A DNA stretch of 54,477 bases from Macrostomum lignano (lineage: Eukaryota). The notes beneath the pieces were generated by a model that was given only the letters and a program-made list of their open reading frames with translations, searched no databases and was not told where the DNA came from. This document shows, in pieces, positions 2,394 through 49,006 of this stretch. The translations under genes and the position numbers were made by a program. The stretch's first letter is position 1; each line of letters begins with the position of its first letter. Where the stretch lies: contig NIVC01000203.1 in NCBI GenBank assembly GCA_002269645.1, positions 1 to 54,477 of the forward strand, in the 5' to 3' direction.

Positions 2394-5300
2394 ATGTCCA
2401 GCGAGCAGGAAATAGCACCGGCTGGCAATGCCGCCGCCGATGGCCAACATCAGCCAGTCGCTGAAGATGCACAGACGATTGTCGAACCGGCAAACTCTGT
2501 TAACAACAATTCCGACGCGTCAGTTGGCGACGCTGACACTTCTGCCACCATCGCCGCCCCAGCCAAGCTGAACGGGCTAGCAACTAGCGGCGGGATTAAA
2601 AAGAGTCAACGGGTTCGCGTCATGGGCGCCAGCGGCAAGCACAATGACAAAGACCTGGCGGAGATGTTTGGCAAATACGGCGACGTGGCGAAGATCGAGC
2701 CGCACAATTATCAGGAAGGCGTGCTAGTCGTCTCCATGGACTGCGTCGATTCGGCCAATCGGGCGGTGGCCGAGCTGAACAATGTGGAATTCCAGGGCCA
2801 GAAGCTGATTCTCAATAATGATTCGGCTAACCAGCGCCGCCTTAATCAGCAGAGGCGGAGCGCTCCGCCGGCCACCAGCCTGCCGCTTAGGGAGAATTAT
2901 CCTCTGCGCATATTAATCAATAGCGATCTGGTTGGCGCCATTATTGGCAAAGGCGGTGAAACAATCAAGGAGATTACTAATAAGACTAAAGCGCGAGTTG
3001 ACGTTAAACGTGAAGTCGTGCAGAAGAATGCCCAGCCTAAGAAGGTCAGTGGTTGCTAAAGTATACATCTTACCTACTGTCTTCTTTCGTATTAATAATA
3101 TATATTTTTAAATATTTGCATCGGTCTATGGATTCAATTAATAGAGCATTACAAACATTTGGTATGTGGGGACTAGTTGTCTTAGCCCCCTTTAGCGGGC
3201 AGTCATAGTTTAGAAAATTAGCATATTTGATGATAGCACACTGAGCTTGAATACATTCTGAAAGTAATATTTTATTTAGAAATTTATTATTGTGTAAAAC
3301 GCTACGTGCATAAGTTTACAGAATGGCTAAAAATTACACTGACACAAAGACGAACCCTTATGACAGACCATAAAGAATTTACTGAGACAGAAGCTGATGC
3401 ACTTACTAAGACAGCTATTTTGTCTTATACCTTGGCAGGCAGACAGAGACAAAAAAACAAATTATCTTAGACATTTAATATGTACAAATGAAAAGTTCCA
3501 TACTCTATGTTTGTGTATCCCGTTGAAAACGTTACCGTGACAAGAAACGCTAAAGAGCCATTGCAAACAACTCACTAGTGACTCAAGCGACTCTTCTGAG
3601 GAGACTCTTTGGTGATTTTTTGACAGACCATGTGACGAAGAGGCGACTGTTGAGTCACAGGTGCATGACGTGAGTTTTAGAGTAAAAAAATGGTCGCGAA
3701 AAAATCGTCAAGGTCCCGCATTGTTTAATGCTTACAAGATCCCGAGGAACTTCCTCATTTAGACACCATTTCCCTCGGCCATTCAGCTAGGCTACAAAGC
3801 ATTGTTCTCAAGACGAAATCGGACTTCAAAGGGATTTTTAATTTCGCGCACCTGCTTCCCTCCTATTATTGCAATTTTTTCAAACATTCCATATTTGCAA
3901 TACTATCATTTTTTGCAGAGCTCGCCGCGTAGTCCAGAGAAGGGAGACGCGACTGAAGCAACGGCTTTGAGCGAAAGACTTCAGGTTAGTCGGGGAAAAA
4001 TAATCTTAGATCTCTTTGATTCTGTCGTCATGTAAATCCACTTTCATTAATAATGAATATGATTAGACTGTTGGCCCTTTCTATCAATGAAAGCAATTCA
4101 AAATTCCAATGCTCTTCTCGTGGGCGGTCCATACTATATTTAGCCGACTTGTGTTTTTGTGTAGTTTTTTCCCGATTTTTGAACGAAGAATCGCTAATTT
4201 TATGCACAGATTGTCTTCGTGTACGGCTCGCCGGAGTCCTGCTCCGACGCCTGCCGCGAGATCATGTCCATCTGCATTGGCGAGGCCAAGGAGAAGGGCA
4301 AAGAGTAAGTCCTGTCTGTCTAGATATGTGTGCGTTTAAACCCCCCCCCTCCAGTGGGGCTTAACACCGGCTTCAGAAGCTTGACATTTCCAGACTCTGC
4401 TGTCAACCCCTTCCCATGCACTATTTGTTGTTTTGAAAGTAAAATATCTCGTCCTATTCCACTGATTGCAGGGAGCCCGATCTTGGCATTCTGGCGGAGG
4501 ACCGTTTCTGCGGACGGATTATTGGCAAGGATGGCAAAAATTTGAATACGATTCGCGAAAAGTCTAAGACAAGCATACAGTTGTCCAAGTATGCAGTTTG
4601 TTTACATCAATTCATAACCGTCTACTCTCCCCCATTGTCTCTTTTTGCCTTTAACCCCTTGCTGCTTTTTGCCCTTTAGCCTTTCCCTCTTGTCTCTCCC
4701 TTGAGCCCCTTGTTTGTCCACTTGACCCCTTGACCTCCTTGTCTTTCCCATTGACCTCTTGCCTGTCCCGTTGACCCCCTTGTCTTTCCCCTCGACCCCC
4801 TTGTCTCTCCTCTTAAACCCTTGTCTTTCCTGTTGACCCCTTGTCTTCCCCTTGACCCCCTTGTCTTTCTCCTTGACCCCTTGTCTGTCCCGTTGAACCC
4901 CCTTGTCCCTTACCTTGACCCCTCTTCTCTGTCCCTTTGAACCCCTTGTCTCTTCCCTTGACCCCTTTTGTCTGTCTCGTTGACCCCCTTGTGTGGCCCA
5001 TTGACTTCCTTGGCTCTCCCCTTGACCCCCTTGGCTCTCCCCTTGACCCCCTTGGCTCTCCCCTTGACCCCCTTGGCTCTCCCCTTGACCCCCTTGGCTC
5101 TCCCCTTGACCCCCTTGTCTGTTACTTTGACCCATTGCCTCCCTTGATTTGAATAAGCGCCTCTGACAAAACGTTTTCTCGCAAAATTTTCAGCTCGCCC
5201 ACCATAACCACCTACGATTCGAGTTCTCCAACATTCAGTCTTGACCGAATCATCACGGTAAAGGGCAGCTTAGAAGGCATGTGCCAGGCTGAGAAGTTCC

Positions 5301-6691
5301 TATCTGAGAAGCTGCGCCAGTGTCACACTATCGATATGCAACAGTACAGCTATGCGCCCTCCGTTAGCCAGGGCTACCCGGCTCCCTATCAGCCTGCCGA
5401 ATTTGGTAAAGTTTTGATTATAGATTGATAATTTTATAATCCTGTGCTATCCTACTTTGAGTAGCCTGTCTCTAATATGGCTGAATATAACTTATTTGTA
5501 GGCTATCCGGCTCCCGTGCCAGGCATGCTGCCGGCCCCTGGGGCTCCGCTGCCCGGCTACTCTGCTGCCGGATTTCGCCTCGGCATGCCCGCCAATCCTA
5601 CGGCTGCCACGTTTGCGCCTTTGCCGTCGCCTTCGGCCGCTGCCGCAGCCCAATACGGCGCCGCCGCTATGCAGGCACCAACGCAACCACCTCCACCGCC
5701 GCCGCAGCCGCTGCCGGCGCATCATCACCAGCAGCAACATCATGGAGGCCATCTAGGCATGGTTGGCATGATGCCAATGGCGCCGGCCGGCCCGGCCATG
5801 TTTGCACCTGCGCCGCCCCCGCCGCAGGCTGCTGTAGAAGAGATCCGATTGGACGAGGCCGTGTACATGCGAATCCCGCACGCCAGCGCCGGCGCCGTTA
5901 TCGGATCCGACGGCGTTTCGATTAAGAAAATCATGGAGGACACAAAGACCTACGTGAACGTTAGCAAGGTGAACGTCGATCCGAAACGCGACGGCGAGCT
6001 GCCGCAAAGACTCGTGACGATCCGCGGCCCGCCTGGCAACCAGTGCCGAGCCCAGTGGCAAATCTTTCAACGAGTTCGCGCCTCGGTCAAGCAGCAGGAG
6101 ACGCCGGACGTGTCCGAACGAGATTTGCGCCTGTGGACGGTGCTGCGCGTGCCCAAGAAGTGGATCGGCCGTATCATTGGCAAGCAGGGCAAGACTGTGC
6201 GCAACCTGCAGGCCACATCTGGCTGCATTATAAATTTACCAGACGAGCCCGATATGCCCGAGGAGCGGGATCAGAGTCTGGAGATTTACGGCAACTTCGA
6301 CTGCACTCAGCTGGCTCTGACTAAAATACGGGCACTTATTAGCCAGGCTCAGGTTCTGCACCAGCAGCAGCTGGCCGCGTCGCTAGCCTATCCGATGCCA
6401 GCCCCGGCTATGCATAGCTATCCGCCTATGCCGCCTGTCATGCCGCCAAGGCTGGCTCCTTACCCGGCGCCGCGGGCCGACTACATGCCAGCCCATGCCG
6501 CTATGCCGCCAATGCCCAGCTATCAGCCACCGCCTCCTCCTCGGGGGCCGCCGCCTCCAAGGCAACAACAGCAGCAGCAGCAGCAGCCTCGCACCGCTGC
6601 TGGTCCATCTGCTGTTGCGAACGGCCACGCCGGTCTGCCTGGAAGCAGCGGCGACGCGAAACAGCAGGCTAGTCCGCCCGTGCCCGCCTAA
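2394..6691 (+). CDS. IGF2BP: IGF2BP/Imp (ZBP1/VICKZ family) mRNA-binding protein, 1 RRM + 4 KH domains, 776 aa; exons 2394-3044, 3919-3984, 4210-4304, 4472-4588, 5194-5405, 5502-6691
   Basis: All five introns are GT..AG with matching phases (0,0,2,2,1) and the exons sum to 2331 nt = 777 codons. KH motifs: LVGAIIGKGGETIKEI, FCGRIIGKDGKNLNTI..DRIITVKGSLEGMCQAE, AGAVIGSDGVSIKKI, WIGRIIGKQGKTVRNLQ. N-terminal RRM ends AVAELNNVEFQGQKL. RRM + KH1-2 + KH3-4 layout matches IGF2BP. Confidence 0.93.
4610..5150. repeat. Pyrimidine-rich ~21-bp minisatellite in IGF2BP intron 4
   Basis: Degenerate GACCCCCTTGTCTTTCCCCTT units, ending in about 5 near-identical CCCCTTGACCCCCTTGGCTCT copies at ~5005-5110. Confidence 0.85.
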
Positions 6692-13095: not shown

Positions 13096-13636
13096 GTTAC
13101 CCTGAATAATCTCCCCAAAGACAGTTGCCCTGGATAATCTCCCCAATGGCAGTCGCCCTGGATTATCTACCAATGGCAGTCGCCCTGGATAATCTCCCGA
13201 CTCCCCAATGGCATTCGCCCTGGATAATCTCCCAATGGCAGTCGCCCTGGATAATCTCCCCAAAGACAGTCGCCTTAGATAATCTCCCAATGGCAGTCGC
13301 CCTGGATAATCTCCCCAAAGACAGTCGTCCTGGATAATCTCCAATGGCAGTCGCCCTGGATAATCTCCCCAATGGCAGTCGCCCTGGATAATCTTCCCAA
13401 TGGCAGTCGCCCTGGATAATCTCCCCCAATGGCAGTCCCCCTTCACGAGAGTCATTCTGGATAGTCTCTGCAATGGCAGTCGCCCTGGATAATGTCCCCA
13501 ATGGCAGTCGCCCTGGATAATCTCCCCAATGGCAGTCCCCCTTCACGAGAGTCATTCTGGATAGTCTCTGCAATGGCAGTCGCCCTGGATAATGTCCCCA
13601 ATGGCAGTCGCCCTGGATAATCTCCCCCAATGGCAG
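13096..13636. repeat. 27-28-bp minisatellite (CCCTGGATAATCTCCCCAATGGCAGTCG)n abutting the STK11 5' end
   Basis: About 17 units seen directly, plus a duplicated ~100-bp higher-order block containing CCCTTCACGAGAGTCATTCTGGATAG. Confidence 0.92.
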
Positions 13637-13688
13637 TGGGTACTCCTACACCACACGCGACATCTCCTTGAGAAAAATCACCCTAAAG

Positions 13689-16600
13689 TCGCCCCGGCAC
13701 TCGGGCATTCCTGCCTCGCAACACTCTGGCGAGCTGCAACTCCCAGCAGTCTCAGCGTCAGCGGCCGTCTGCGGCGCCTATAGTCGATGAATTCGACGGC
13801 GGCTGCAACGAGGACATCAGCGAGCTGAATGGCGAGCTGCATAATTTCATCACCAGACTAGACGAGACCTCAATCGTATACGTGAACAAGCCGCCTAAGC
13901 TGCTGCAAGATCGCTATTTATTAGATGAGAAATTAGGCGAAGGCTCCTACGGCAAGGTGAAGCTGTGCGTAGACAGACAGACTGGCGACCGGCTAGCCGT
14001 TAAGATTGTGACAATCAGGCTGGTGCGCAAGATTCCGCAGGGTCTGGAGACTGTTGAGCGAGAGGCCGCCACAATGCGCCAGCTGAAGCACGTCAATACC
14101 GTCCGGTTGTACGCCGATTTCTCCGACGAGCAGTGCCAGAAACGCTACCTAGTGATGGAGTTTGCCGTCTGCAGCATCCACGACCTGCAGTCCAAGGGCA
14201 TGACAATGGATGCCGAATATTTCCGCTGCCTGCCGGAGTCGCAGGCGCGGCACTATTTTGCCCAGCTATTAGACGGCGTTGAATATTTGCATAATCTGCG
14301 CATTGTTCACAAAGATCTGAAGCCGGGCAATTTGCTGCTCACAGCCGATCACACGGTTAAGATTACCGATTTTGGCGTTTGCGAGCAGCTGCCGGAGAGT
14401 GCGCTTGACGATACCATCACTGGCACTCAGGCTACACCTGCTATTCAACCGCCTGAGGTGAGTGTAGTTGGGCAAGGAGTTCTCCATGACTACTAAATGA
14501 CAAACTTTTCACATTTCTGTCAGAGCTGCGAATAACGCAACCGGCTATTGAGTATTTGGTGACATTTAAAATCCGAGTAAATTCTCGCAACCGGCTCTTG
14601 AGTATTTGGTCACACTTAAAATCCGAGTAAATTCTCGCAACCGGCTCTTGAGTATTTGGTGACATTTAAAATCCGAGTAAATTCTCGCAACCGGCTCTTG
14701 AGTATTTGGTCACACTTAAAATCCGAGTAAATTCTCGCAACCGGCTCTTGGAGTATTTGGTCACACTTAAAATCCGAGTAAATTCTCGCAACCGGCTCTT
14801 GAGTATTTGGTCACATTTAAAATCCGAGTAAATTCTCGCAACCCCGGCTCTTGGAGTGTTTGGTCACACTTAAAATCCGAGTAAATTCTCGCAACCGGCT
14901 CTTGAGTATTTGGTCACACTTAAAATCCGAGTAAATTCTCGCAACCGGCTCTTGGAGTATTTGGTCACACTTAAAATCCGAGTAAATTCTCGCAACCGGC
15001 TCTTGAGTATTTGGTCACATTTAAAATCCGAGTAAATTCTCGCAACCCCGGCTCTTGGAGTGTTTGGTCACACTTAAAATCCGAGTAAATTCTCGCAACC
15101 GGCTCTTGAGTATTTGGTGACATTTAAAATCCGAGTAAATTCTCGCAACCGGCTCTTGAGTATTTGGTCACACTTAAAATCCGAGTAAATTCTCGCAACC
15201 GGCTCTTGAGTATTTGGTCACACTTAAAATCCGAGTAAATTCTCGCAACCGGCTCTTGAGTATTTGGTGACATTTAAAATCCGAGTAAATTCTCGCAACC
15301 GGCTCTTGAGTATTTGGTCACATTTAAAATCCGAGTAAATTCTCGCAACTGGCTCTTGAGTATGTGGTCACATTTCAAAGCCGAGTAAATTCTCAGCAGG
15401 CGCTGTTGTCTATAAAGTGCGTCAATTAGCACTGCGCCTCAGTGCAGCCTTGCCAAGCCTCCAAATTTTATCAGCACGTCGACCACATGTGCTTGCATCA
15501 GCGCTGACCTCCTTGGTCTCTGGCCTTCACCCAGGGGGAGCTTCTGGACCTTCAGCAGGTGGCACCAGGTGATCATGGACACCGTGTTGCGAATTTCTGA
15601 GTTTAGCTGATCAAGCCTCGCCAATGGTCAAACCTCAACTGCTGGACATCCTCAGCTGGTCTCACAAGCATTCCCACATCACCCGACGCCGTCGGCACCT
15701 TTAACGGGTGATACAAGACTGTGAAGTCTAGGTTTGCGTGCCGAAAAAAGGTGGCCTCTGTAAGGCTCTGTTTACTCAATATATTTATTAGTCAATATTG
15801 TGGGGTGGGGTGAAGCGATGCGCGATTGGTCGAGAATTAGTAAACAATTTTAGGCGAGAGAATGAGTCATGAATAATAATGTGGGGCAGAGAGTGCAGCG
15901 CACGGCCTACTCCCTACAAAGACGATTGTGGACACCCTGTTGCAACTATACCTGCTTTTTCTTATCAAGCTTCAATAACGATCAAATCTCAACTGCTAGG
16001 TAGCAACTGGTTTCTCAAGAATTCTTCTTCTTGTCTTTTGTTGCCGGAAGGCGTGGCGCTCTTCGAGCCACTCCAATCTGACGGCTACAACTCTTGGGCC
16101 CAGTTATCGCCGTCCGTTAGGCATGGAGCCACCAAAACTGCAACCGCCTGACCGTTGTAACCCGGAGAGCAGTTCACTAGAATGATGTTTAAAGAGGTGC
16201 ATCGGGTCGTGGGTCCGAAGCCGCTCAGTGAGAGGGGGTTCGCCGAACTTTTGCGCGAGCTCATGACTGCAGGCCTGCCCCCCCCCCTTGAGCTGTTACT
16301 TTGCCAGTTGGCCACGCCAGCAGGCCGCTTGACAGCACGTGGAGGTGAGCAGCTCTAAGCCAAGCTGCTCAAGCATTCAGTCGTCATCCAGACGCCGTCG
16401 TCTCCTTCAACTGGTGACACAAAGTCTCAAGGAAAATCCCCCCTCCCTTGGTAGTTCGACGGGAGGAAAAACGGCTTTGTATTTTTACTTAATGAAGAGC
16501 CTAGATTTAAGGCGGGCGGTCTAGCGCGTCGCTCTTATGTCAGTCACCTTAATTTGGGTTAAATTGGGATCTCGGCTTGGCTCTGCTCGTGCAATTAATG

Positions 16601-21592: not shown

Positions 21593-23173
21593 ATGATTCT
21601 GCAACTAGGCCTTCTGTTTCTGTGTCTCGGACACTTTGGTGTCGAGACAACATCGGTGCACGAGGTCGCGATTTCAGTTCGCAGTGTCAAATCCATTGTC
21701 TATCGAGGCATGCAACTGTCCATCTTTGAGCACGTCGAAATGCCCCGTCGCTACTTTTTTCAGCCGCTTAGCTTCCTCGACGCCGCCTCGGCACGTCTTG
21801 TGGACAATTCCGAACTCAAGCTCACCGAACTCCATTTTGATGTTTACCTGTGGACTGACGAATTCATCCAGCTAGTTGAGAGCCACTTTGCCGAACACAA
21901 ATCTGTGGAGCTGCTGCCTCTGACAGAGATCAGTCTGACCTGGTCAAAGCACGCATCCATGTGGCTCGGCGCTGAGTTCAATCGAACATACCGCCTACTG
22001 GATGAGTGGAAAGACGGCGACAAGCCGCATATGAGAAGTACATTCACCATCTTCTGCGACAAGCGTGACGCGTGCGAGCGACTGATGTCGAAGTTCAACC
22101 AAAGCAACGAGGCGATCGGCAACATTTTCGATCTGAGGTACAAGATCCAGTGCGACAACTCGCGCAACTTCTCGCTAACCGTTCGCAGCAACCACTTCTT
22201 GCAGTCATCCACATTTCAGCAATTGGACAAATTTGCTTCGCAACACGGCAGTGGTGAGGTTATTATATCTGAGCAGACTGTCGACCAGCTGGCCGACCAA
22301 GTGTACACTGCTGCTCTAGCTGATCTGCAGCGCGACGTCAAGCAGCAGCTGACCTCTGTTGACAGCAAGTCGCACCAAGCCATTCTAACAGACCTTCACC
22401 GTCACCTGCGCTCCAACCAGGTGCACTCACTGAGCGACTTCCAGTGGAAAAGCAGAGTGTACTGGCCTCAGCACCGGGTCAGTCTTCGGCCTGACCAGTT
22501 GTCTCGCATTTTCAACGAGCTGTTTAAGCCTTCTGCCACACAGCCTCGAATGGTAACGCTGCCGAACTCCGGTTCGCTGGCGTCTGCCGGTGAGACACTG
22601 CCTCCGGCTGAATTCGCCAAGATCAGCGCATTTGTGCAGCTCCACATCGGCCAGCGCAAAGGCTCCGATCAGCCTGTCGTCCCTGTCAACGAGGTCCACA
22701 GCCTGGCTGTTGAGCTGGGCAGCTATGCCGACTGGGATGTCGCTAAGCGGCAGTTCGTTCCGCCGCCATCCCTCATTCTGTTCCGCGTCGACCTGCTGTC
22801 AGTGCGCCGTCGTGGAATCTTTCTGATGCGCGACATTACCGTTAGCTTCAAGGTGTCGCAGCACATGGACCCGGTACACCCGCTGCCTAAGGACACGGAG
22901 TTCCAGAGCTCTCTGTGGCAGCGCCACTTTGCCGGCTCATTCTGCATCCTGGCTAACCGTGGCGAGCCGCCTGGCATGCAGTGCCGCGTGCTGTCCTACC
23001 TGTTGCCGACCAAGTCTCTGCAGCGAGAAATTCGCAACCAGCTGAGCTCGCCGCGGCCCAGCATCAGCTACAGCGGTGGGCACATCGGGCAAAGCCACTT
23101 CTATCAAGTCAACCCGGAGGAGTTTAGTTTCAGCATCAAGATATGTTGCACAAAGGACTTGGAGAACCCGTAG
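21593..23173 (+). CDS. Secreted protein of unknown function, paralogue A (526 aa, intronless)
   Basis: Long ORF with host-like GC-rich codons. The first ATG is at 21593 (the track start 21572 is TTG). Hydrophobic signal peptide MILQLGLLFLCLGHFGVET, N-glycosylation sequons NRT/NQS/NFS, C-x5-C pair, and a C-terminal GSFCIL..KICC domain. Clear paralogy with 26552-28399. Confidence 0.88.
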   Translation: MILQLGLLFLCLGHFGVETTSVHEVAISVRSVKSIVYRGMQLSIFEHVEMPRRYFFQPLSFLDAASARLVDNSELKLTELHFDVYLWTDEFIQLVESHFAEHKSVELLPLTEISLTWSKHASMWLGAEFNRTYRLLDEWKDGDKPHMRSTFTIFCDKRDACERLMSKFNQSNEAIGNIFDLRYKIQCDNSRNFSLTVRSNHFLQSSTFQQLDKFASQHGSGEVIISEQTVDQLADQVYTAALADLQRDVKQQLTSVDSKSHQAILTDLHRHLRSNQVHSLSDFQWKSRVYWPQHRVSLRPDQLSRIFNELFKPSATQPRMVTLPNSGSLASAGETLPPAEFAKISAFVQLHIGQRKGSDQPVVPVNEVHSLAVELGSYADWDVAKRQFVPPPSLILFRVDLLSVRRRGIFLMRDITVSFKVSQHMDPVHPLPKDTEFQSSLWQRHFAGSFCILANRGEPPGMQCRVLSYLLPTKSLQREIRNQLSSPRPSISYSGGHIGQSHFYQVNPEEFSFSIKICCTKDLENP

Positions 23174-24564
23174 TGCGATAGGCTCGGGTTGTCGGATCGG
23201 AAAAATGGTTAACATTTGTTTTGCAAATGATTTACATCAACGCTCGTATTCGATTAACTTCGAACTTGGCAGCGTTATTTTTAAAATCATCCGTATTGAA
23301 CTATCGCACCCACTAGTTAGTGCTTCGCACTTGATACTAGGTCCTGTCTGCCTCAAATTTCTATCAATACTATGGTAAAATGTGCGTCATCTTTTCTGTG
23401 TAGTTGCTTGTATTGTTGGACCGATATTTTTTAACACGCCAGACCGCGTGCTCGTGTTGTCTTTTTGCATCGGGAATCACAGGTTTTTGTTCTATAACGT
23501 TATAGGACTTCCATTCTGTTATCTATTTCGCAATGCATATATTTAGCAGTCGTAATCTATTATTATCTAGCAGAATGGTTTGAAGCAGACTTCTGTGACG
23601 AATTGCTAGGAAAGTATAAATATACAGGAGCAAATCATGCTTGGGTTCAGTGTGAGGGCTGCGTACAACACGACCAAATTTTTATCAGATACCAGATCAG
23701 ACATTGGAACATCGCATGTAAACGAATCTAATAAACAGATGCTAATTAGCATTTTAATTTGCTGTTGGGCTATTAATGCAAAATTCAATTGTCAGGAAAA
23801 GCTAGTAGTTTTTTTTGCTGTCACTGGATTTGAAGCAGTCACAGGATGGAGAGATAGATATAATCCTTTTCTTCTGCGGAGCAGGGACAGTTTCTCTGAA
23901 AAAGTAGAAAACTAATGCCCAGACAAGGAGGGTCTACTTTGGTGCTGCAGACTGTTATGACTTCGCACTCTATGAGTGCGCTAGCTATCTAAGATAGCTT
24001 TTTTAACTTTCTTTTCCCATGCAGACATTGCTTATAAATAACGCTGACGCAAATGCATTTACCGCAGCAGAGGGAGAGCGTGTCTGCAGGGAGTTGTCCA
24101 TGGCAGGCAATGCCAAGCTTCACCCTTAAGCATTGACGAGCGGGCGGCGTCTGTCACTTGGCCATCAAACTTTTTCCCACTTATCGCGCAGCTCTGATGA
24201 CTTACTTTACTTTATGCAGACAGACAACCGGTCGGCTGACCCGCAGAACTTTCCACCCGATCGTTCCCCTGGGGGGTACTATTATTTTTGTTTCTTCTAG
24301 GTATTCATTTGATTGGCAGTCCAGCATCCTTGATGCTGCAAAAGACGGACAGTCGATATGTTTGCCTTCGCATCACAACTAGAAAGCTTCAGTCTGTCAA
24401 TTATTTAACTAATGAAATGTTCCACTCTTTAAGCCCTTTGAAAGCGCCCACAAGTTGTGCGAATTCTTACAAAAGACACACTGCAGTATTCAGCAAATAT
24501 AGCAGCGCAATCAGCATTCTTGAGTGACTGTGTCGCCCTTACTTTGTCTGGTTGGGGTCTGCAT

Positions 24565-24978
24565 CAGGGGCGTAGCCAGGAATTTTGTTTGGGGGGGGGG
24601 CCTTGAGTTAGGGGGCGCCAGCTTCTTATAGGGGGGGGCGCCAGTTTCTTGTAGGGAGGGGGGGGGGCGCCAGTTTCTTTTAGGGGGGCGCCAGTTTCCT
24701 TTAGGGGGCGCCAGTTTCTTTTAGGGGGGGGGCGCCAGTTTATTTTAGGGCGGGCGCCAGTTTCTTATAGGGGGCGCCAGTTTCTTTTAGGGGGGGCGCC
24801 AGTTTCTTTAAGGGGGGCGCCAGTTTCTTTTAGGGGGGCGCCAGTTTCTTATAGGGGCGCCAGTTTCTTTTAGGAGGGGGGCGCCAGTTTCTTTTAGGGG
24901 GGGGGGGCGCCAAGGCCAGAGTTGGTGATTATGGGGGGGGGCCACGGCCCCCTTGCCCCCCCTCTGGCTACGCCCCTG
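24565..24978. mobile_element. Non-autonomous hAT-type MITE, 414 bp, with internal G-rich tandem repeat
   Basis: TIR CAGGGGCGTAGCCAG..CTGGCTACGCCCCTG and perfect 8-bp TSD GTCTGCAT at 24557-24564 and 24979-24986. About 14 internal GGGGGGCGCCAGTTTCTTTTA-type units. Confidence 0.92.
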
Positions 24979-26468
24979 GTCTGCATACAGCTTTAATTGT
25001 TTACGGATGTGGGCGTAAACACAAGAGCATCGGTACAATCGCAGGGTAGGTAAAAAAACTCGAGGCCTCGTTAAATACGTTTGCAGCTCTCAAAGCTTAC
25101 TGAAGTTTATGCAGAAGCTTTCAACTGTCAACAGAAGCTAGGAGCTGTCTTAGTTTAAGGTGCATCGTAAACTTTTTTCAGGAAACTGGTAAGCAAAAAT
25201 AGCTTTATTTATTGCAGATCCTTTCGGCTGCCGAAACAGTTAAGTCAGCTAATACACCAGCAGTACCACTGCTTTATGCTTTATTTATGCTTTTAGTCGC
25301 ACGCTATTGCCCCTGCTGCAGACAACAACTTTCAGAAGGAAATTCATAAAGTTACTCGAAAGCAACTCCTGTTGCACCTGTTTTGTTCCTAAGCTGCACT
25401 CGAATTCGCGCGGTTGTGTTGCCATAAAAGCTACTTTTTACAAGCCAGGACGCTGACATTTGGGTGAGGATGGATTGATTCCACAGTTGACATTGGAATC
25501 GGCCAACCGTCTGTCTGCTAGCAAAAAATCCAGCCAAATCTGCTGACCGCTTCAATTGATAAGTAGGAAACTGAAATGTCATCGAGGAACCTGCCGGTAC
25601 CATTTGATTTTCTTAAACAATGTAGGGCTTTTGTTGTAGGCCTGTTTCGCTGCAATCTTCTATCGTTAAATTAACAAGCTGCAAATTGTATAGTTCCATT
25701 TTAGAGCATTGAGAACTTAGCAATTTCGCATCACATGATGCGCTGCTGGCCGCCGTTCCGAACTTTCGAGGGATTATTGATGTGAGAGGTAGTTCCTCCC
25801 CTGAAGGGTGTTGGTCCGACCGTCCGACGAGACTAACTAGGCGGAACTTTCCTTCAAGCGCCTGCACTCGCTCAACTTTCCATAGGCAGCGAATAACTAG
25901 ATGGGTGCCTGGCGCCGCCAGTAATGAGGAAAAGGGGAACTTGGGCCCCAGACCCCCTTTCCCCTAGCAGATTGCAAATTCCAACGCAACGGGAGTGCGG
26001 CGAATTGCTAGCTGAGAGTTGGAGGTGCAGAGGCCAGATTGCCTGGCACCTCCCGCGGAGAAAGAGGCCAAGTAGACTTACAGACTCGCATTGTAGACCA
26101 TTTCCGCGCCCCCAGCAACTATCACCAGCTGTTCCTTTCCAAATCTCCCTACAGTTGCAGACTAAACCAGTTTTCGGTGGGCCTTCACATAGTCATAAAC
26201 CCAGGCGTGCACAGCAGGGATCCAGATCCCACATTTGGGAACAACTGGCGTCAATTAAACGCCCAATACCAGGCCTATTCGCTCTCAGCCAAGTAATTAT
26301 AAAGATTCTTGCGAAATTCCAACACTTCGGCCTGCATTCTTCACGCCCGAGGTTGTTACAAGAAACCACTCATGCTATACAGAATTTGATTGCTAGTCAC
26401 GTGATTCTGACATAACAGCCCGATGTGCGGGCGTTACCAAGGCAGGCTATCCAGCACCACCTGATCCC

Positions 26469-26476
26469 TATAAATA
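26469..26476 (+). promoter_or_regulatory. Candidate TATA box of paralogue B
   Basis: TATAAATA about 76 nt upstream of ATG 26552; position is plausible but unverified. Confidence 0.45.
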
Positions 26477-26551
26477 CACAGCTGACCAGGAAGGGATACA
26501 GGCTTAAATTCCACACTATTTCTTAAAATCGAACAAAATCTGTGACCAAAA

Positions 26552-28399
26552 ATGTTTAACTGGAGGCTGCTATGCCTCTTCGGCTTCCTGCTAGGACACA
26601 TCGGCGTCCACGCAGCATCTGTGCACGAAGTGTCAATCTCCGTGCGAAGCGTCAAGTCCATTGTCTATCGAGGCATGCAGATCTCGGTATTTGAGCATGT
26701 CCAAACGCCTAAGCGCTACTTCTTCCAGCCCTTAGGGTTTCTCGATTCTGCCTCTGCGCGGCTAGCCGACAATCCTGGGTTCAACCGCACGGAGCTTCAC
26801 ATCGATATTTACCTGTGGACTGACGAGTTCATCCTGCTAGTTGAGAGTCACTTCACCGAGCACAAGTCCGTGGAGCTGCTGCCTCTGACTGGACTCAGTT
26901 TGACCTGGTCGAATCGCGCATCTATGTGGCTCGGTCCCGACTTCAATCGAACATACCGCCTACTGGATGAGTGGAAAGACGGCGATAAGCCGCATATGAG
27001 AAGTACATTCACCATCTTCTGCGACAAACGCGACGCGTGCGAGCGGCTGTTTTCGAAGTTCAACCAAAGCAACGAGGCGATCGGCAACCTTTTCGATCTG
27101 AGGTACAAGATCCAGTGCGACAACTCACGCAACTTCTCGCTAACCGTTCGCAGCAACCACTTCTTGCAGTCGTCTGTCTTCCAATACCTGGACCGGTTTG
27201 CATCCCAGCGGCCCGCAGATCGACAAGTGATAATTCCCGAACAGTCTGTGAATGAGCTGGCCGACCAGGTATACACGGCTGCGCTAGTCGAACTGCAGCG
27301 TGAGGCCAAGCAGCACTTCACCTATGTTGACAGTGAGTCACGCCAAGCCATCCTGGCTGATCTGCATCGCCACCTGCGCTCGCGTCCGGTGCACTCGCTG
27401 AGCGATTTCCAATGGAGGAACTACGTCGCCTGGCCTGCTGACCGCCTAGACATGCGCCCGGACAAGCTTGCGCACATGTTCAACGCTCTGTTCACGGCCT
27501 CCGACCGGCCGCTGACAGTGCAACTCACCAGCGCCGACCGGATGAACGAAGTTCGCGAGACCCTGCCAACCGCCGAGTTCATGAAGATCGACGCGTTCGT
27601 CCGACGCTACACGCCCAGGCGTCCAACCGACACTGTGCCGATCCCAGTTACCGAAGTTCGCGACCTTTCGCTAGCACTTTCCAGCCCCGTTGTCTGGAAT
27701 GTGTCCACCAATAGGTTCACCGCCTCGCCAAACAGCGTCATGTTTCGCATCAATATTGAGCAGATAAAGAGTGAAGGCACGCTGTTGATCCGCGATGTCC
27801 TAGTATTCTACAAGGAGACTGCCCATCGGGATCAGGTGACCCCGCTGGATCGCTCCAAAGGCGGCATCGAGACTACCTGGCGCGCACAGGCTGACCAGCT
27901 GGACACTAATCTGCAACAGCTGCAGCAGAAGGTGAGACAACTGGAGTCCAGCCTCAGGCGAGTCTTATCCGAGTTCGACAGCTGGACTTCCGTGTACGCG
28001 CCTGGAGGCCGCGGTCCAAGTGGCGTCAACCTACGCAGCGGTGAAGCGCCGGTTGAGTTCTACCCACCGGTTGGCCCCAGAGAGGCCATGCCCGACCTGG
28101 CCGCCCTGCGCCGCTCCCTGGCCTCGCTGGAGACCCGGGTGGCCGGCCTGGCCGCTAACCGGTCCCGGCTCTACCAGCCGCGGTTCGCCGACTCCTTCTG
28201 CGTATTGGCTAATCGGGAGAACCCGCCCGGCATGACCTGCCAGATCCTGTCCATGATCATCCCCAAGAAGTCGCTGCGGTACAGTCCGATATTCGACAGG
28301 CGCATTCGCTACCAGGAGGGCCGCATCGGCCAGAGCCACCTGTCCGAGCTGAACGATGACTTTGTCGCTTTCAGCCTCAAGATTTGCTGCACCGCCTGA
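26552..28399 (+). CDS. Secreted protein of unknown function, paralogue B (615 aa, intronless, extra coiled-coil neck)
   Basis: ATG-initiated ORF with signal peptide MFNWRLLCLFGFLLGHIGVHA. Colinear with paralogue A except for a ~90-aa insertion with heptad repeats before the C-terminal DSFCVL..KICC domain. AATAAA at 28684. Confidence 0.9.
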   Translation: MFNWRLLCLFGFLLGHIGVHAASVHEVSISVRSVKSIVYRGMQISVFEHVQTPKRYFFQPLGFLDSASARLADNPGFNRTELHIDIYLWTDEFILLVESHFTEHKSVELLPLTGLSLTWSNRASMWLGPDFNRTYRLLDEWKDGDKPHMRSTFTIFCDKRDACERLFSKFNQSNEAIGNLFDLRYKIQCDNSRNFSLTVRSNHFLQSSVFQYLDRFASQRPADRQVIIPEQSVNELADQVYTAALVELQREAKQHFTYVDSESRQAILADLHRHLRSRPVHSLSDFQWRNYVAWPADRLDMRPDKLAHMFNALFTASDRPLTVQLTSADRMNEVRETLPTAEFMKIDAFVRRYTPRRPTDTVPIPVTEVRDLSLALSSPVVWNVSTNRFTASPNSVMFRINIEQIKSEGTLLIRDVLVFYKETAHRDQVTPLDRSKGGIETTWRAQADQLDTNLQQLQQKVRQLESSLRRVLSEFDSWTSVYAPGGRGPSGVNLRSGEAPVEFYPPVGPREAMPDLAALRRSLASLETRVAGLAANRSRLYQPRFADSFCVLANRENPPGMTCQILSMIIPKKSLRYSPIFDRRIRYQEGRIGQSHLSELNDDFVAFSLKICCTA

Positions 28400-29968
28400 T
28401 GACTGCAGTGAGGCTGCAAAGTTTGAGTGGTTCACATTGACCTTAACTATGAAGACAACAAATGAGAAATATTTTCCGGGCTCAGTCTCCCGATGAGCGC
28501 GGCATTTGGTCGCATTCTACCTTTGACTCTTAATTAGTAGTTAAACCTTTGTGCAGTGCAACACAGTTTTACTAACCTCTCCAATTTTTTATTCAGCCAG
28601 CATTCTCTCGAAATGCTACTATTAGTAAAAAAAAAACGGCGCAAAAAGCTTTTCTTTTCAAATCCAACTGCTAGCTGGAAGCAAATAAAAATTGATACAA
28701 CAGCGTTCATTTCGGTACTGTTTCATAACTTATTGGTGTCAAAGTATAGTTGAAGATTTGCTTATTTTAACCAATTGTCCATCCACGTACAAGGCTTAGA
28801 TTGGCACTCCATTCTATTCTTTCTTCCATGGTGAAAACGCTCAAAATACCGTTGCGTTTTTCTACGGCGCTGAATGGGCTTTCGCCATAGACAATTTCAG
28901 TCCAGAAGATCCTATGACAAAAATACACTAAGGAGATAGGAATTACTACTGGAACTGACCTGAAGGTATTACTTTAAGTAGCGTAAATTGACGGAATGCA
29001 AATCGAAACTAGCGTCAGCCTTTATATTCGGTTTGTTTATCATGGCTGGCTAACTGATTTCTATTCAGAGGCTTGCAGGCGAAATGCATTTGACTAAAAT
29101 CAGGCTCTTCTAAACCCGAGTCGGGTCGAATCGATGAGACTGGGCTATCATGAAATCAGAAGAGATGCCAGCAAGGGCTGGGTGAAGCAGCAGGCATGGC
29201 GGCAGCGGGGAAGTGACAATGGGAAGCAAAGCGGGATACAAGCGATCAATCGATTGTCAGTCGGTGCATGATCTGGGAGGCATTGTGGGATGAGAGCTGG
29301 GTCTTGCAAGCTGGCTGCCAGGAAGGCCCGCAAAGTCTTCGGATTGCAACTGCAGCGGCAGAAAGTGGCAATGCAGATGAGTTTTCCCTACCGGTGCACT
29401 TTTCGCCTTTCCCTTTCTGCTTTTTGCACTTTTCGGTTAAATTAAGGCATGATTGATAGAGCTTCCCGGAGCAGACCTTTTATTTATTATTCCATTAGTA
29501 TTAGTATTATTATTATGCTGGTAAAAAAACAAACTACTTAAGCTCCCATGGCTGTGAGTTTCTAGGGGCATTGGTTCTTGATACAACCAATTCTTTCGGT
29601 TTTCGGTATTAATCTTGTTTTTATACAGTAAGTGACGACTGATGGAGAGCGTCCTCAAAGCTCTGGCTTACCAATCTGAGCTGCTATTCAAAGTTAATCT
29701 GTGATCTGAGGCTGAGCTTATCCTCAAATACCACACAGCATATTGATGAAGAATAATATTCTCGCACGCCAATTCAAGCTCAGCATCCTTATTTTATCGC
29801 AGCCAATATAGGCATTGAGAGGGCTCTCATTCCCTAGCCAGTCTGCCCCATAAGAGGATAATTTTCTGTGGCGAATCCGAATCAGCATGAAAATCATTCC
29901 CCTAAGACTGAGCACCTTTTCAACAGAGAATGTTTTTTGTCTCCATTAAAGATTTGGGGTTCTGAGCT

Positions 29969-30862
<894 letters not shown>

Positions 30863-31262
30863 AGTGTTCGGTGATTAATGTTGCCGCAGCCAACGGCAGA
30901 CAGGAAACTGTGTCAGTTTCAATTCACACCAGCCCCTTCCGGTGGATAACGGACAGCGCGACTGACTGACTATCATTACATGAAACAGTTGGAAAAGCAA
31001 TATTCAGAAATACACTGCCGCCTTGAACTCGGCTCAGCTTCTTCCGACATCAAGGTAATACTCGTACCAAAGCAAGAGCAGGGAGCGGTAGGATAACCGC
31101 TGCAGATCGCTATTGTGCGACAGGATAAATGGGGGAACGGGCTGAGTCCCCATTTTTGTTGTTTTTTATTAGTGAATTTTACGTTTGAGTTGCATCTGAG
31201 CTGACTTTTCATTAATTTTCTTTAGGAGAGGCGCAGCTTTTCATTCTCTGCTTTTGTCAATA

Positions 31263-31688
31263 CAGTCAGTCAGTCAGTCAGTCAGTCAGTCAGTCAGTCA
31301 GTCAGTCAGTCAGTCAGTCAGTCAGTCAGTCAGTCAGTCAGTCAGTCAGTCAGTCAGTCAGTCAGTCAGTCAGTCAGTCAGTCAGTCAGTCAGTCAGTCA
31401 GTCAGTCAGTCAGTCAGTCAGTCAGTCAGTCAGTCAGTCAGTCCAGTCAGTCAGTCAGTCAGTCAGTCAGTTAGTCAGTCAGTCAGTCAGTCAGTCAGTC
31501 AGTCAGTCAGTCAGTCAGTCAGTCAGTCAGTCAGTCAGTCAGTCAGTCAGTCAGTCAGTCAGTCACCCACTCACTCAAGTCAGTCAGTCAGTCAGTCAGT
31601 CAGTCAGTCAGTCAGTCAGTCAGTCAGTCAGTCAGTCAGTCAGTCAGTCAGTCAGTCAGTCAGTCAGTCAGTCAGTCAGTCAGTCAGT
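31263..31688. repeat. ~425-bp (CAGT)n tetranucleotide microsatellite
   Basis: Seen directly; about 105 units with a few interruptions. Confidence 0.98.
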
Positions 31689-31927
31689 CTGGTTTAATAC
31701 CGCACGCTCTCAGCTGGCCATAAATGGAGGTTTTAAAATCAAAGATGCGAAACTTTTTACGGAATTATGAGTTATGGATTGTTTTTTTAGTTGCTTAACC
31801 TTCCGCCTTTATTTTTCATTATTTATTTGCACTGGCTGAGCAAGCAGCAGAGCGGGCAGGCTGTCCGAGTTAGTGTCCAGTCAACATGTCCTGCTCGCTA
31901 TCTTTCCGCTTTTATTTGTCCAACTGG

Positions 31928-32275
31928 TCAGCCGAGGAAACCCGGCGAGCCTCTGGACGATGAAACCGGCTGCCGCAGACTGTCGAGGTCGGACTCTAGC
32001 GGCATGCCGAACATGGCCGCCGCCTCCGAGCTGCTGCCAGCTCTCTTAGCCAGCCTGGCCTGCCGCAGGCGGCGCAGCACCTCTAGGAGGACGCTGTCGG
32101 GAGGCAGGCGACCGTCGTCTACAACAGCGTAGCCAGTGTTGATGCCAAGGACATCCGTCTCGTCACCGGAGCTGTTGGCCAGCGGCGTCGGGAGCAGAGC
32201 GGCGAATAACGCGATGGCAACTATGGATGCGGAGTTGTTGGCGTTTGTCAGAGTGCTAGTCCCTGTGTTGGTCAT
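31928..32275 (-). CDS. Putative neuropeptide/peptide-hormone precursor (115 aa)
   Basis: GC-rich coding-like island with hydrophobic signal segment SIVAIALFAALLPTPLANS, acidic spacer, dibasic RR and KR sites, and C-terminal amidation-donor Gly (GSPGFLG*). AATAAA on the minus strand at 31911-31916 lies 12 nt after the stop. The ATG is in the last minisatellite unit. No family assignment possible. Confidence 0.55.
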   Translation of the reverse strand: MTNTGTSTLTNANNSASIVAIALFAALLPTPLANSSGDETDVLGINTGYAVVDDGRLPPDSVLLEVLRRLRQARLAKRAGSSSEAAAMFGMPLESDLDSLRQPVSSSRGSPGFLG

Positions 32276-33385
32276 AGAGTGCTAGTCCCTGTGTTGGTCA
32301 TAGAGTGCTAGTCCCTGTGTTGGTCATAGAGTGCTAGTCCCTGTGTTGGTCATAGAGTGCTAGTCCCTGTGTTGGTCATGGAGTGCTAGTCCCTGTGTTG
32401 GTCATAGAGTGCTAGTCCCTGTGTTGGTCATAGAGTGCTACTAGTCCCTGTGTTGGTCATAGAGTGCTAGTCCCTGTGTTGGTCATAGAGTGCTAGTCCC
32501 TGTGTTGGTCATGGAGTGCTAGTCCCTGTGTTGGTCATAGAGTGCTAGTCCCTGTGTTGGTCATAGAGTGCTAGGTTCTGTGTTGGTCATAGAGTGCTAG
32601 TCCCTGTGTTGGTCATGGAGTGCTAGTCCCTGTGTTGGTCATAGAGTGCTAGTCCCTGTGTTGGTCATAGAGTGCTAGTCCCTGTGTTGGTCATAGAGTG
32701 CTAGTCCCTGTGTTGGTCATAGAGTGCTACTAGTCCCTGTGTTGGTCATAGAGTGCTAGGTTCTGTGTTGGTCATAGAGTGCTAGGTTCTGTGTTGGTCA
32801 TAGAGTGCTAGTCCCTGTGTTGGTCATAGAGTTTTAGTCTCTGTGTTGGTCAAAGAGTGCTAGTCCCTGTGTTGGTCATAGAGTGCTAGGTTCTGTGTTG
32901 GTCATAGAGTGCTAGTCCCTGTGTTGGTCATAGAGTGCTAGGTTCTGTGTTGGTCATAGAGTGCTAGTCCCTGTGTTGGTCATAGAGTGCTAGGTTCTGT
33001 GTTGGTCATAGAGTGTTAGTCCCTGTGTTGGTCATAGAGTGCTAGGTTCTGTGTTGGTCATAGAGTGTTAGTCCCTGTGTTGGTCATAGAGTGCTAGTCC
33101 CTGTGTTGGTCATAGAGTTTTAGTCTCTGTGTAAGTCAAAGAGTGCTAGGTTTTGGTTGGTCATAGAGTGCTAGGTTCTGTGTTGGTCATAGAGTGCTAG
33201 GTTCTGTGTTGGTCATAGAGTGCTAGGTTCTGTGTTGGTCATAGAGTGCTAGGTTCTGTGTTGGTCATAGAGAGCTAGTCTCTGTGTTGGTCATAGAGTG
33301 CTAGTCCCTGTGTTGGTCATAGAGTGCTAGCCCCTGTGTTGGTCACAGAGTGCTATTTTGGTCATGAAGTGCTAGCACTGTGCCA
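32250..33385. repeat. 26-bp minisatellite (AGAGTGCTAGTCCCTGTGTTGGTCAT)n, ~43 copies
   Basis: Seen directly; variants include GGTTC for GTCCC and a 29-bp unit with an extra ACT. Confidence 0.96.
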
Positions 33386-47512: not shown

Positions 47513-49006
47513 TCATTCTTCATCAGCTCCACCGTCGGTCGGCGCCATCTCCGATGCCAGCGGGCGCATCTCGGCTAGCCTCAGAGCGTCCTTTTCGTTA
47601 GAAGCGACTTCGTCTCGCTGGCGCAGAACCTGCGCCGCAATGACGCAGTGTCCTTTGTTCTCGGGCGAACTGGACGGCGAGCCTCCTTCCGGGTAGTTAT
47701 TTCGCTGGTGCGGCTGGTGCTGGCCTACCGTGCTGCTGACGATCCCGGACGTGAAGTTTGTTCCCGTCCCTGGGCTGCCACCACCGTAGCGAACTCCGCG
47801 CGAAGTATCAGCAGCTGTCAGTCGGGCAGCCCAGCGAGGACAGAGCGTCACGAGCATTGACTTGCGGAAGGAGGCGGACACAACGCAATAAAGAATGAAG
47901 TTGACCGCGCAGCCAAGGACCTGGCTAAGCGTGACAACATGAAGCAGAGAGTTGACGCTATAGTAGGTGGGCACGGAACTGACGTCACCCCGACGCAGAC
48001 GGTCCTTCAACTCGCCGGTGATAAACTCACGGCAGAAGAAGTTTACCAGTTCGGCGGGAGCAATGGTAACAAAAAATATGGCTGTTGCTGCCACCAGAAG
48101 AGGCGTCAAACTGTCTTTTTGCTGCTGCTGTTGTTGCTGCTGTCGGGTTGTTTTATCGAATCGCACCTGCATCTTGCCGCTGGCCCGGTTAGTGTTGTTG
48201 CTCCTGTTGCGCGAACTGACAACTGCAGATGAGTCAGCATCTCGGGAGCTTCCTGTCAAACGGTTGCGCTGCCGAAGGCTGGACCTGTAGGCTAGAATCA
48301 GCTTAACATTTCCCACAATCATCACCAGCAGGGGTAGAACATTAACTAGAATCGCGCAGAGCCAAGGATACACCAGGGTGAAGAGTCTATGCGAGAAAAA
48401 GTCGCGCCTCTTCTGCACGTAGCAAACCGGCTCCGGGCCGCAGGGCGCGTGGCGCTCAATTTTAAACTTAAAAAAGTACGGAGCGTGCAGCCCGAAAGCC
48501 AGCAGAAATATTCCGACAATGGCGCAGCGCAGTTTGCGCCGAGTCAGCCAGGATCTGGCGCGTAGCGGCTGCCAGACGGCTATGTAGCGGCAGACGGTGA
48601 TGGAGAGGGTGAGCCAGATGCTGGTGGCTAGAAACGCGCTGACCATGGCGGAGGCCCAGGCGCGTGCGTGGCTCAGTAGCCAGGAGGTGCGCACGCCAAC
48701 TGTAATGCTGAGCGGCAGAGCCCACAGACAGACGCTGAGGTCGGACACGGCCAGTGCGGTCAGCGAGTGCGACACCGAGCCTTCTAGACCTTCGCGGCCG
48801 AGGCGGCGTCGTATAAAGACGGCAAGATTGACGGCATTGCCGGCTAGTCCGATGCAGCACACCAGCTTCAGGGCCACGTCCATCACTGCGAACTCGAAGG
48901 TCTTTGCGTTGCTTAAGTGCTCTGCAATCAGCTCGCGAAACTCGTCGCTGCTGTTGTTACTTGATGGCATCTTGGCGAGCTGCAATGAGGTGAGATAAAT
49001 TGACAT
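47513..49006 (-). CDS. Class A peptide GPCR, FMRFamide/myosuppressin-receptor-like (Srw-type), ~497 aa, single coding exon
   Basis: Seven hydrophobic segments: TM1 CIGLAGNAVNLAVF, TM2 LAVSDL, TM3 ITVCRYIAVWQPL, TM4 LHAPYFF, TM5 NVLPLLVMIVGNVKLI, TM6 FFVTIAPAEL, TM7 AVNFILYCVVSASFRKS. N-glycosylation site NNSS. First ATG at 49006 (the track start 49135 is GTG); strong acceptor TTTTTTTATTTTCAG before 49057. Confidence 0.92.
   Translation of the reverse strand: MSIYLTSLQLAKMPSSNNSSDEFRELIAEHLSNAKTFEFAVMDVALKLVCCIGLAGNAVNLAVFIRRRLGREGLEGSVSHSLTALAVSDLSVCLWALPLSITVGVRTSWLLSHARAWASAMVSAFLATSIWLTLSITVCRYIAVWQPLRARSWLTRRKLRCAIVGIFLLAFGLHAPYFFKFKIERHAPCGPEPVCYVQKRRDFFSHRLFTLVYPWLCAILVNVLPLLVMIVGNVKLILAYRSSLRQRNRLTGSSRDADSSAVVSSRNRSNNTNRASGKMQVRFDKTTRQQQQQQQQKDSLTPLLVAATAIFFVTIAPAELVNFFCREFITGELKDRLRRGDVSSVPTYYSVNSLLHVVTLSQVLGCAVNFILYCVVSASFRKSMLVTLCPRWAARLTAADTSRGVRYGGGSPGTGTNFTSGIVSSTVGQHQPHQRNNYPEGGSPSSSPENKGHCVIAAQVLRQRDEVASNEKDALRLAEMRPLASEMAPTDGGADEE

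Follow-up and report, generated by a model that had tools for sequence, protein, structure and literature searches.

A tandem pair of genes for putatively secreted proteins of an unnamed, cross-phyla family in Macrostomum lignano

The stretch of DNA analyzed here, referred to as the window, is the whole 54,477-bp contig NIVC01000203.1 of the Macrostomum lignano Mlig_3_7 assembly. It carries two neighboring genes, gene 1 and gene 2, which are deposited as hypothetical proteins and code for a short and a long paralog with a putative signal peptide, a core of about 400 amino acids (aa) and a small C-terminal tail containing four cysteines. Both genes are real and under constraint and belong to a family that crosses phyla. 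The core of this family has neither a known family nor a known fold, while its tails vary and include lectin domains. Based on this architecture, the two proteins may be extracellular recognition or agglutination factors.

Gene structure, constraint and assembled copies of the tandem pair

An initial annotation of this DNA had described two colinear, uninterrupted open reading frames (ORFs), and their positions were reproduced exactly (Table 1). The genes lie on the same strand with a spacing of 3,378 bp. Their description as intronless holds for the coding sequence, in which sense the word is used here, since the alignment with homologs spans the single ORFs end to end. All motifs quoted in the annotation are present in both proteins, i.e. 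IVYRGMQxSxFEH, YFFQPLxFLD, LWTDEF, CDKRDAC as the C-x5-C motif, and WPxxRxxxRPD in the core, and SFCxL..PPGMxC..GxIGQS..KICC in the tail. Also, both N-termini are hydrophobic and signal-peptide-like as judged by a hydropathy heuristic, in agreement with the proposed signal peptides, and a hydropathy scan of both proteins found no other membrane-span-like or amphipathic stretch beyond this segment. In the structure of the gene 2 protein predicted by AlphaFold2, the signal-peptide region forms a helix (residues 2-16) followed by a low-confidence segment (18-24). The two helices of its stalk are split by a Pro/Gly-rich linker of low confidence and show hydrophobic residues at a spacing of 3-4, and weak matches to coiled-coil families of Pfam were obtained at aa 441-481. 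The tail was modeled as a small beta-rich knob. Three N-x-S/T sequons are common to both paralogs, which are thereby N-glycosylatable, and the mature window proteins contain seven Cys residues, an odd number that would leave one Cys free for an inter-chain bond. No third copy beyond genes 1 and 2 was found by tblastn of the window, and the pattern search that located a TATA box in front of gene 2 found none upstream of gene 1.

Table 1. Positions of features of the tandem gene pair (nucleotides of the window) and of C-terminal tails of family members (residues)
Feature	Sequence	Position	Strand	Basis
Gene 1 coding sequence (P0002), 526 aa, uninterrupted, short paralog without coiled-coil stalk	Window	ATG 21593..stop 23173	+	ORF list
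Gene 1 putative signal peptide, ~aa 1-18, MILQLGLLFLCLGHFGVE, cleavage site approximate	Window	21593..21646	+	Kyte-Doolittle maximum 2.61 (9-aa), aa 5
Gene 1 conserved family core, ~aa 19-434	Window	21647..22894	+	Family alignment A2 and hidden Markov model (HMM) match
Gene 1 C-terminal 4-Cys tail, ~aa 445-526, Cys 451, 464, 518, 519	Window	22925..23170	+	BLASTP, Cys positions
AATAAA, 557 nt 3' of gene 1 stop	Window	23730	+	Pattern search
TATAAAT box, 83 nt 5' of gene 2 ATG	Window	26469..26475	+	Pattern search
Gene 2 coding sequence (P0003), 615 aa, uninterrupted, long paralog with heptad-repeat stalk	Window	ATG 26552..stop 28399	+	ORF list, AlphaFold2 model
Gene 2 putative signal peptide, ~aa 1-21, MFNWRLLCLFGFLLGHIGVHA	Window	26552..26614	+	Hydropathy 2.97 at aa 6
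Gene 2 conserved family core, aa 22-436, mixed alpha/beta, predicted local distance difference test (pLDDT) score mostly >90	Window	26615..27859	+	AlphaFold2, alignment
Gene 2 stalk, long predicted helices aa 439-482 and 516-535, heptad spacing, absent in gene 1	Window	27866..28156	+	AlphaFold2, gap in gene 1
Gene 2 C-terminal 4-Cys tail, aa 545-615, Cys 550, 563, 612, 613, pLDDT 56-82	Window	28184..28396	+	BLASTP, AlphaFold2
AATAAA, 285 nt 3' of gene 2 stop	Window	28684..28689	+	Pattern search
Probable gene-conversion tract, gene 1 side	Window	21977..22206	+	dS, identical runs
Probable gene-conversion tract, gene 2 side	Window	26942..27171	+	dS, identical runs
Tail: small 4-Cys knob ending CC	M. 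lignano, acoel-type sequences, Plectus			Alignment
Tail: C1q, E 4e-18	Daphnia pulicaria P0035	716-845		Domain scan
Tail: phage-tail-collar	Tardigrade P0025	499-547		Domain scan
Tail: phage-tail-collar	Metagenome sequence P0030	732-791		Domain scan
Tail: NHL repeats	Adineta vaga P0032			Domain scan
Tail: Link domain (Xlink)	Tardigrade P0014	414-478		Pfam scan
Tail: C-type lectin (Lectin_C, E 4e-11, QPD motif) after coiled coil	Metagenome locus L042 (Ga0170475_127213871)		+	Domain scan

The two paralogs share 63% identity over 431 aa of the core (BLASTP, E = 0) and 48% identity over 85 aa of the tail (E 1e-20). On the DNA level, only positions 21626-22448 and 26591-27416 can be aligned (80.7%), and the flanks do not align. 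According to the Nei-Gojobori method, the synonymous divergence (dS) is ~1.2 and the ratio of nonsynonymous to synonymous divergence (dN/dS) is 0.23, indicating that the duplication is old and that both copies are under purifying selection. In a relative-rate test against a third M. lignano paralog (P0008, see below), 37 changes were unique to gene 1 and 36 to gene 2, thus neither copy is decaying. Gene 1 was also considered as a pseudogene, which was rejected for the window copy because its ORF is intact and its rate equals that of gene 2. Within codons 100-210, dS is 0.36 compared to 1.4-2.3 elsewhere and identical runs of 36-44 nt occur, so this tract probably results from gene conversion between the paralogs.

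Further copies of the locus are present in the assembly, which fits the known neopolyploidy of M. lignano. Contig NIVC01004284.1 (L001) aligns collinearly with the window (98-99% identity) and also contains both genes in tandem. Compared with the window copy, gene 1 of L001 shows a single difference, a 1-bp deletion in codon 278 (L001 ~10833, corresponding to window position 22426), which truncates the ORF at 279 aa and reflects either a true frameshift allele or an error in the assembly. Between genes 1 and 2, the window contains a G-rich 21-bp tandem array with 11 copies (24662-24902), and the alignment of the window with L001 breaks across 24567-24978; this intergenic array probably differs between the assembled copies. 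A third contig, NIVC01001952.1 (L002), carries gene 2 at 2596-4443, close to the contig end. The corresponding protein PAA62307.1 (P0004) differs from the window copy by two aa. Its substitution L95Q, giving DEFIQLVE, matches the gene 1 sequence and is another hint of exchange between the paralogs.

Several public models of this locus combine both genes. In PAA47939.1, A0A1I8G0X7, A0A1I8J910, and A0A1I8JD22, the N-terminal ~207 residues come from gene 1 and all following residues from gene 2, and the model of PAA47939.1 spans 6.3 kb over both genes on L001 (10001-16345). The position of the junction coincides exactly with the end of the tract of identical 36-44-nt runs, and the simplest explanation is therefore that a transcript was assembled as a chimera or that the model was joined wrongly. 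The four models are therefore most likely assembly or annotation chimeras, while real read-through splicing may be considered as an alternative. Three of the UniProt entries start with 26 residues that correspond to a translation of the DNA directly 5' of the gene 1 ATG. Such a start points to a model derived from a transcript and is the sole hint of expression of the locus. The UniProt names Fmp27_GFWDK, Peptidase_M1, and Vitellogenin domain-containing were rejected, because near-identical sequences carry different names and Pfam scans detected none of these domains. With wrong public models and names, expression studies using them mix up the two paralogs.

Family distribution, conserved core and variable heads

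For an exhaustive HMMER search, a two-sequence profile of genes 1 and 2 was compared to 1.84 billion representative sequences (E <= 1e-3), and 32 proteins were matched. Among these is the third M. lignano paralog BOX15_Mlig006920 (P0008, 665 aa; E 1.5e-100), which shares the architecture including the stalk and the 4-Cys tail; the M. lignano paralogs of the family fall into three groups. Other members originate from the acoels Symsagittifera roscoffensis and Convolutriloba macropyga, the tardigrade Paramacrobiotus metropolitanus, the bdelloids Didymodactylos carnosus and Adineta vaga, the nematode Plectus sambesii, and Daphnia pulicaria, and from unnamed ENA and Logan assemblies. Word-index homolog searches with a single protein or with the alignments A2 and A3 gave almost only Macrostomum and Plectus. 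For a reciprocal comparison, a profile was built from 19 non-Macrostomum cores, and E values were scaled to a space of 1.8e9 sequences. This profile matched gene 1 with E 1.7e-45 and gene 2 with E 8.6e-42 over residues 24-429, covering the full length of the core profile with its ~365 positions, so that the homology is solid.

Metagenomes were scanned with a degenerate DNA pattern for the WxxVFW..RPDK motif. Among the 47 contigs obtained, 39 contain ORFs matching the family HMM (E <= 1e-3) with up to 396 bits, and these metagenomic members include some single ORFs and many that are split by introns. A motif scan of IMG/VR gave 14 matches, which by a rough estimate is about the number expected by chance; none was real, and the best one reached 16.6 bits that mostly came from the pattern. 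Likewise, the four matches in 185,579 prokaryote genomes include no real homolog. Both scans detect only members keeping WxxVFW..RPD(K), so these negative results are weak.

The core had no match in Pfam, NCBIfam, and PHROGs, and sequence searches of the Protein Data Bank (PDB) with the proteins and with the family profile also remained without a match. The identifiers of the genes and the locus were not found in full-text literature or in supplements of M. lignano papers, for which coverage is poor, and nothing relevant was found in the literature on tail-collar fusions in rotifers, tardigrades or Daphnia. The core represents a real family that spans phyla and that, as far as databases and literature show, is unnamed and uncharacterized.

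Near-invariant residues of the core (numbering of gene 2) are P60, P111, W141, the pair C157-x5-C163, W288, W294, R302-P303-D304, and N311. All of them are present in both window proteins, and each is kept in at least 85% of 33 members. P60, P111, W141, and C163, which lie outside the search pattern, are likewise conserved in 12 independent metagenomic members. C163 is near-invariant and usually paired with C157. R302-P303-D304 occurs in 29-30 of 30 members and N311 in 27 of 30, while H49 and E81 are found in ~70%. At three consensus acidic positions, Macrostomum carries substitutions (D232 to S, E239 to Q, and D251 to E).

With the two paralogs only, AlphaFold2 reached a pLDDT of 41, and this model was replaced by a run based on an alignment of 33 sequences. 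The resulting model of gene 2 (mc766fb839de4) has a mean pLDDT of 81.8, and residues 30-430 mostly score above 90. The predicted core is a mixed alpha/beta structure in which two long beta-hairpins (181-200 and 410-428) pack onto helices, and an internal repeat was not found by profile-profile comparison of six core segments. A Foldseek comparison of the model with 350,542 PDB chains gave no match at E <= 0.001 (best E 0.09, template modeling (TM) score <0.15); the absence of a known fold therefore means the absence of a solved fold. The core is thus undescribed, having neither a curated family nor a solved-fold match, and the statement of the initial annotation that it belongs to no named family stood on the level of both sequence and fold.

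A comparison with the predicted structures of BFVD gave a sole significant match, the uncharacterized protein A0A7S7YF07 of Medusavirus stheno T3 (E 4e-14, probability 1.0). The alignment comprises 464 columns and essentially the whole viral protein of 417 aa. However, the sequence identity is 11%, the TM scores are 0.31 and 0.43, and the root-mean-square deviation is 15.9, so that the domain arrangement or the model quality differs. Also in contrast to the gene 2 protein, the viral protein is core-sized and has neither a stalk nor a tail. This structural link raises the question of whether genes were exchanged between animals and giant viruses or the hosts of these viruses.

A signal-peptide-like hydrophobic segment directly precedes the core in 20 of the 33 members according to the hydropathy heuristic, and the remaining ones look N-terminally truncated. 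The heads are all located C-terminally to the core and differ between members (Table 1). In many members, core and head are separated by a heptad-repeat segment, and some members appear to consist of the core only. Together with the core-sized viral relative, the latter indicate that the core has a function of its own for which no head is needed. The initial annotation had likened the core to secreted families of Daphnia and bdelloid rotifers whose tails vary and are lectin-like, and such proteins were indeed found: a C1q head in Daphnia, NHL repeats in Adineta, a further bdelloid member in Didymodactylos, Link and tail-collar domains in Paramacrobiotus, and a C-type lectin in a metagenome. 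In the latter locus (L042), the core is split over two frames (+1 and +0) by an intron or a frameshift. Three of the head types in the family are carbohydrate-binding types.

The window proteins themselves have no C-type lectin and no C1q domain according to a Pfam scan. A weak resemblance of their tails to a half-repeat of the ApeC domain known from apextrin had been noted in the initial annotation, and this comparison did not hold. An ApeC domain is ~200 aa long and is characterized by eight conserved Cys and three DXED motifs (PMC9585378), whereas the window tails have ~75 aa (~70-85 aa), four Cys and no DXED, and gave no match to ApeC (PF16977) or any other family when scanned alone against Pfam at E <= 5. 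The best ApeC match of the whole family was found in the acoel sequence P0012 (WPAGSYCILKNGDCPPGF), covering 25 residues at profile positions 70-95 with E 0.0018 and 18.6 bits, compared to a cut-off of 26.5. Common to ApeC proteins and the window proteins is that both are secreted invertebrate proteins, as far as the latter can be judged from their N-termini, with a Cys-containing C-terminal module, and in the window tails the motif persists as a degenerate version (SFCxLAN..PPGMxC). Unlike in apextrin, no MACPF domain precedes the tail.

Possible functions and origin of the family

The reading that we tentatively favor, with a confidence somewhat short of an even chance, is that the window proteins are secreted and serve in recognition or agglutination, probably as oligomers, with the 4-Cys knob as head and the core supplying a shared activity. 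It is suggested by the combination of a constant core, a frequent coiled-coil neck and interchangeable binding heads, which mirrors collectins and C1q-type proteins. As in these, family members combine a signal peptide and a heptad neck with a C-type lectin head (L042) or a C1q head (P0035), and the N-terminal part is constant while the head varies. They differ from collectins in that the constant part is a globular alpha/beta core of ~400 aa instead of a collagen stalk or a short Cys-rich segment. A further difference is that both window proteins carry only the 4-Cys knob in place of a C-type lectin or C1q domain, and that gene 1 has no neck.

In such a scenario, the chains would be held together by the stalk, perhaps with the help of the unpaired Cys, and would probably form trimers. 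A trimeric stalk is supported by the fact that C1q and tail-collar domains form trimers in their known contexts. In gene 2, the stalk would hold the 4-Cys knob away from the core, and several C-terminal heads would simultaneously contact a glycan or surface ligand. The conserved core might then supply a common downstream activity, such as higher-order assembly, recruitment of a partner or another effector step. In the worm, this could serve extracellular recognition or agglutination, e.g. in mucus or innate defense.

Several points weigh against this proposal. Secretion, oligomeric state and ligand of the window proteins are inferred, and the same applies to ligand binding by the 4-Cys knob and to any role in defense. 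The window proteins have no recognized lectin domain, and the knob has no known binding activity and reached a pLDDT of only 56-82. Since the stalk is absent in gene 1, oligomerization by a coiled coil cannot apply to this protein. The conserved core residues are mostly structural ones (P, W, and C) plus R-P-D-(K) and are silent on an effector activity, and core-only members as well as the core-sized 417-aa relative of Medusavirus point to a function of the core that is independent of a head. Also, a protein composed of modules that include binding domains would be compatible with a role in matrix, adhesion or reproduction as well.

The last point leads to an alternative that we consider unlikely but worth weighing, namely that the proteins are structural, adhesive or reproductive components, for example of matrix, mucus, eggshell or seminal fluid, with the core as an assembly domain and the heads anchoring it to matrix glycans. 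Lineage-restricted secreted proteins with reproductive or adhesive roles are numerous in M. lignano, and the several paralogs in three groups, the Link domain (hyaluronan-binding type) of a tardigrade member and the odd number of Cys residues, which allows cross-linking, would agree with such a role. However, the proteins contain no low-complexity or repetitive stretches of the kind that adhesives and eggshell proteins typically have, a dN/dS of 0.23 does not correspond to the rapid evolution usual for seminal-fluid proteins, and the gene identifiers did not appear in the M. lignano supplements or the full-text search with their poor coverage. Considerably less probable in our view are pore-forming or cytolytic toxins, an idea already raised in the initial annotation, in which the core would attack the membrane and the tail would provide the targeting, as MACPF and ApeC do in apextrin. 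Secretion, an architecture with a targeting domain, the two long beta-hairpins packed against helices and the ApeC-like motif of one acoel homolog are compatible with this, but the Foldseek comparison of the confident model with the PDB (best E 0.09) revealed no similarity to MACPF/CDC, aerolysin, actinoporin, Cry or other pore formers. In addition, Pfam gave no MACPF or aerolysin match, and the proteins have no amphipathic or hydrophobic stretch beyond the signal peptide, so the toxin idea remained unsupported. Similarly improbable is a core acting as an enzyme or a small-ligand-binding domain, with the R-P-D-K motif, H49, E81, and N311 forming the site and the heads only providing localization. 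The near-invariance of R302-P303-D304, the frequencies of N311, H49, and E81 given above, and the existence of core-only members would suit a catalytic or binding site, but the consensus acidic positions are substituted in Macrostomum, and no enzyme family was detected by sequence or fold.

Another explanation concerns the origin of the family and not its function. It assumes a horizontal spread among giant viruses, protists and small aquatic animals, by which the intronless genes and the patchy distribution would be explained, and we assign it only a small probability. The Medusavirus stheno protein as the sole significant fold match (E 4e-14), the intronless coding sequences and the scattering of the named hosts across phyla speak for it. 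On the other hand, genes 1 and 2 sit among ordinary host genes of the window (kinase, KH/RRM, and a G-protein-coupled receptor (GPCR)), the locus was assembled at least twice (window and L001) with gene 2 also on L002, the duplication is old (dS ~1.2), and many metagenomic members are intron-split. The viral and prokaryote motif scans gave no true homolog, and the patchiness may reflect the weak two-sequence profile of the one exhaustive search.

Beyond the role of secreted recognition factors proposed for the two window proteins, a more far-reaching and doubtful possibility is that the core represents an extracellular fold that has not been described before and that occurs in several invertebrate phyla as well as in a giant virus of amoebae. 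Its role would be that of the constant effector module of a head-swapping innate recognition family, a counterpart to collectins, ficolins, and C1q in which a globular core replaces the collagen stalk and contributes an activity of its own (assembly, membrane attack or signaling). If so, the core would be a widespread, unnamed building block of invertebrate extracellular biology and a new constant module among the pattern-recognition architectures of animals. A confidently modeled fold without a solved relative is here combined again and again with different heads (C1q, C-type lectin, Link, NHL, and phage-tail-collar), and such head swapping is typical of recognition systems under diversifying pressure; uncharacterized families of this kind are, however, not rare. 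M. lignano is a good test organism, as transgenesis and RNA interference exist there.

Neighboring genes and repeats of the window

An uninterrupted ORF of 540 aa on the minus strand (47513-49135) codes for a seven-transmembrane protein of the rhodopsin family (E 1.4e-22) and represents an intronless GPCR gene. On the plus strand, ORFs with KH and RRM domains (2394-3059 and 5477-6691) are probably exons of one or two genes for RNA-binding proteins, and a C/T-rich tandem array with periods of 21/42/63 bp lies between them (4689-5147). A protein-kinase exon (13882-14496) is flanked by a 28/55-bp array (13100-13637) and by a 50-bp array with 17 copies and 94% matches (14536-15394). Both kinase-flanking arrays are also present on L001 with different copy numbers. 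An ORF of 336 aa (29868-30878) with weak beta-barrel/Omp85 matches in Pfam was rejected as a gene, because it is a (CT)446 microsatellite read as SLSLSL. On its 3' side, (CAGT)106 at 31263-31689 and a 26-bp minisatellite with 42 copies at 32250-33355 follow, and these three arrays account for the extreme GC and AT skew at 30-34 kb.

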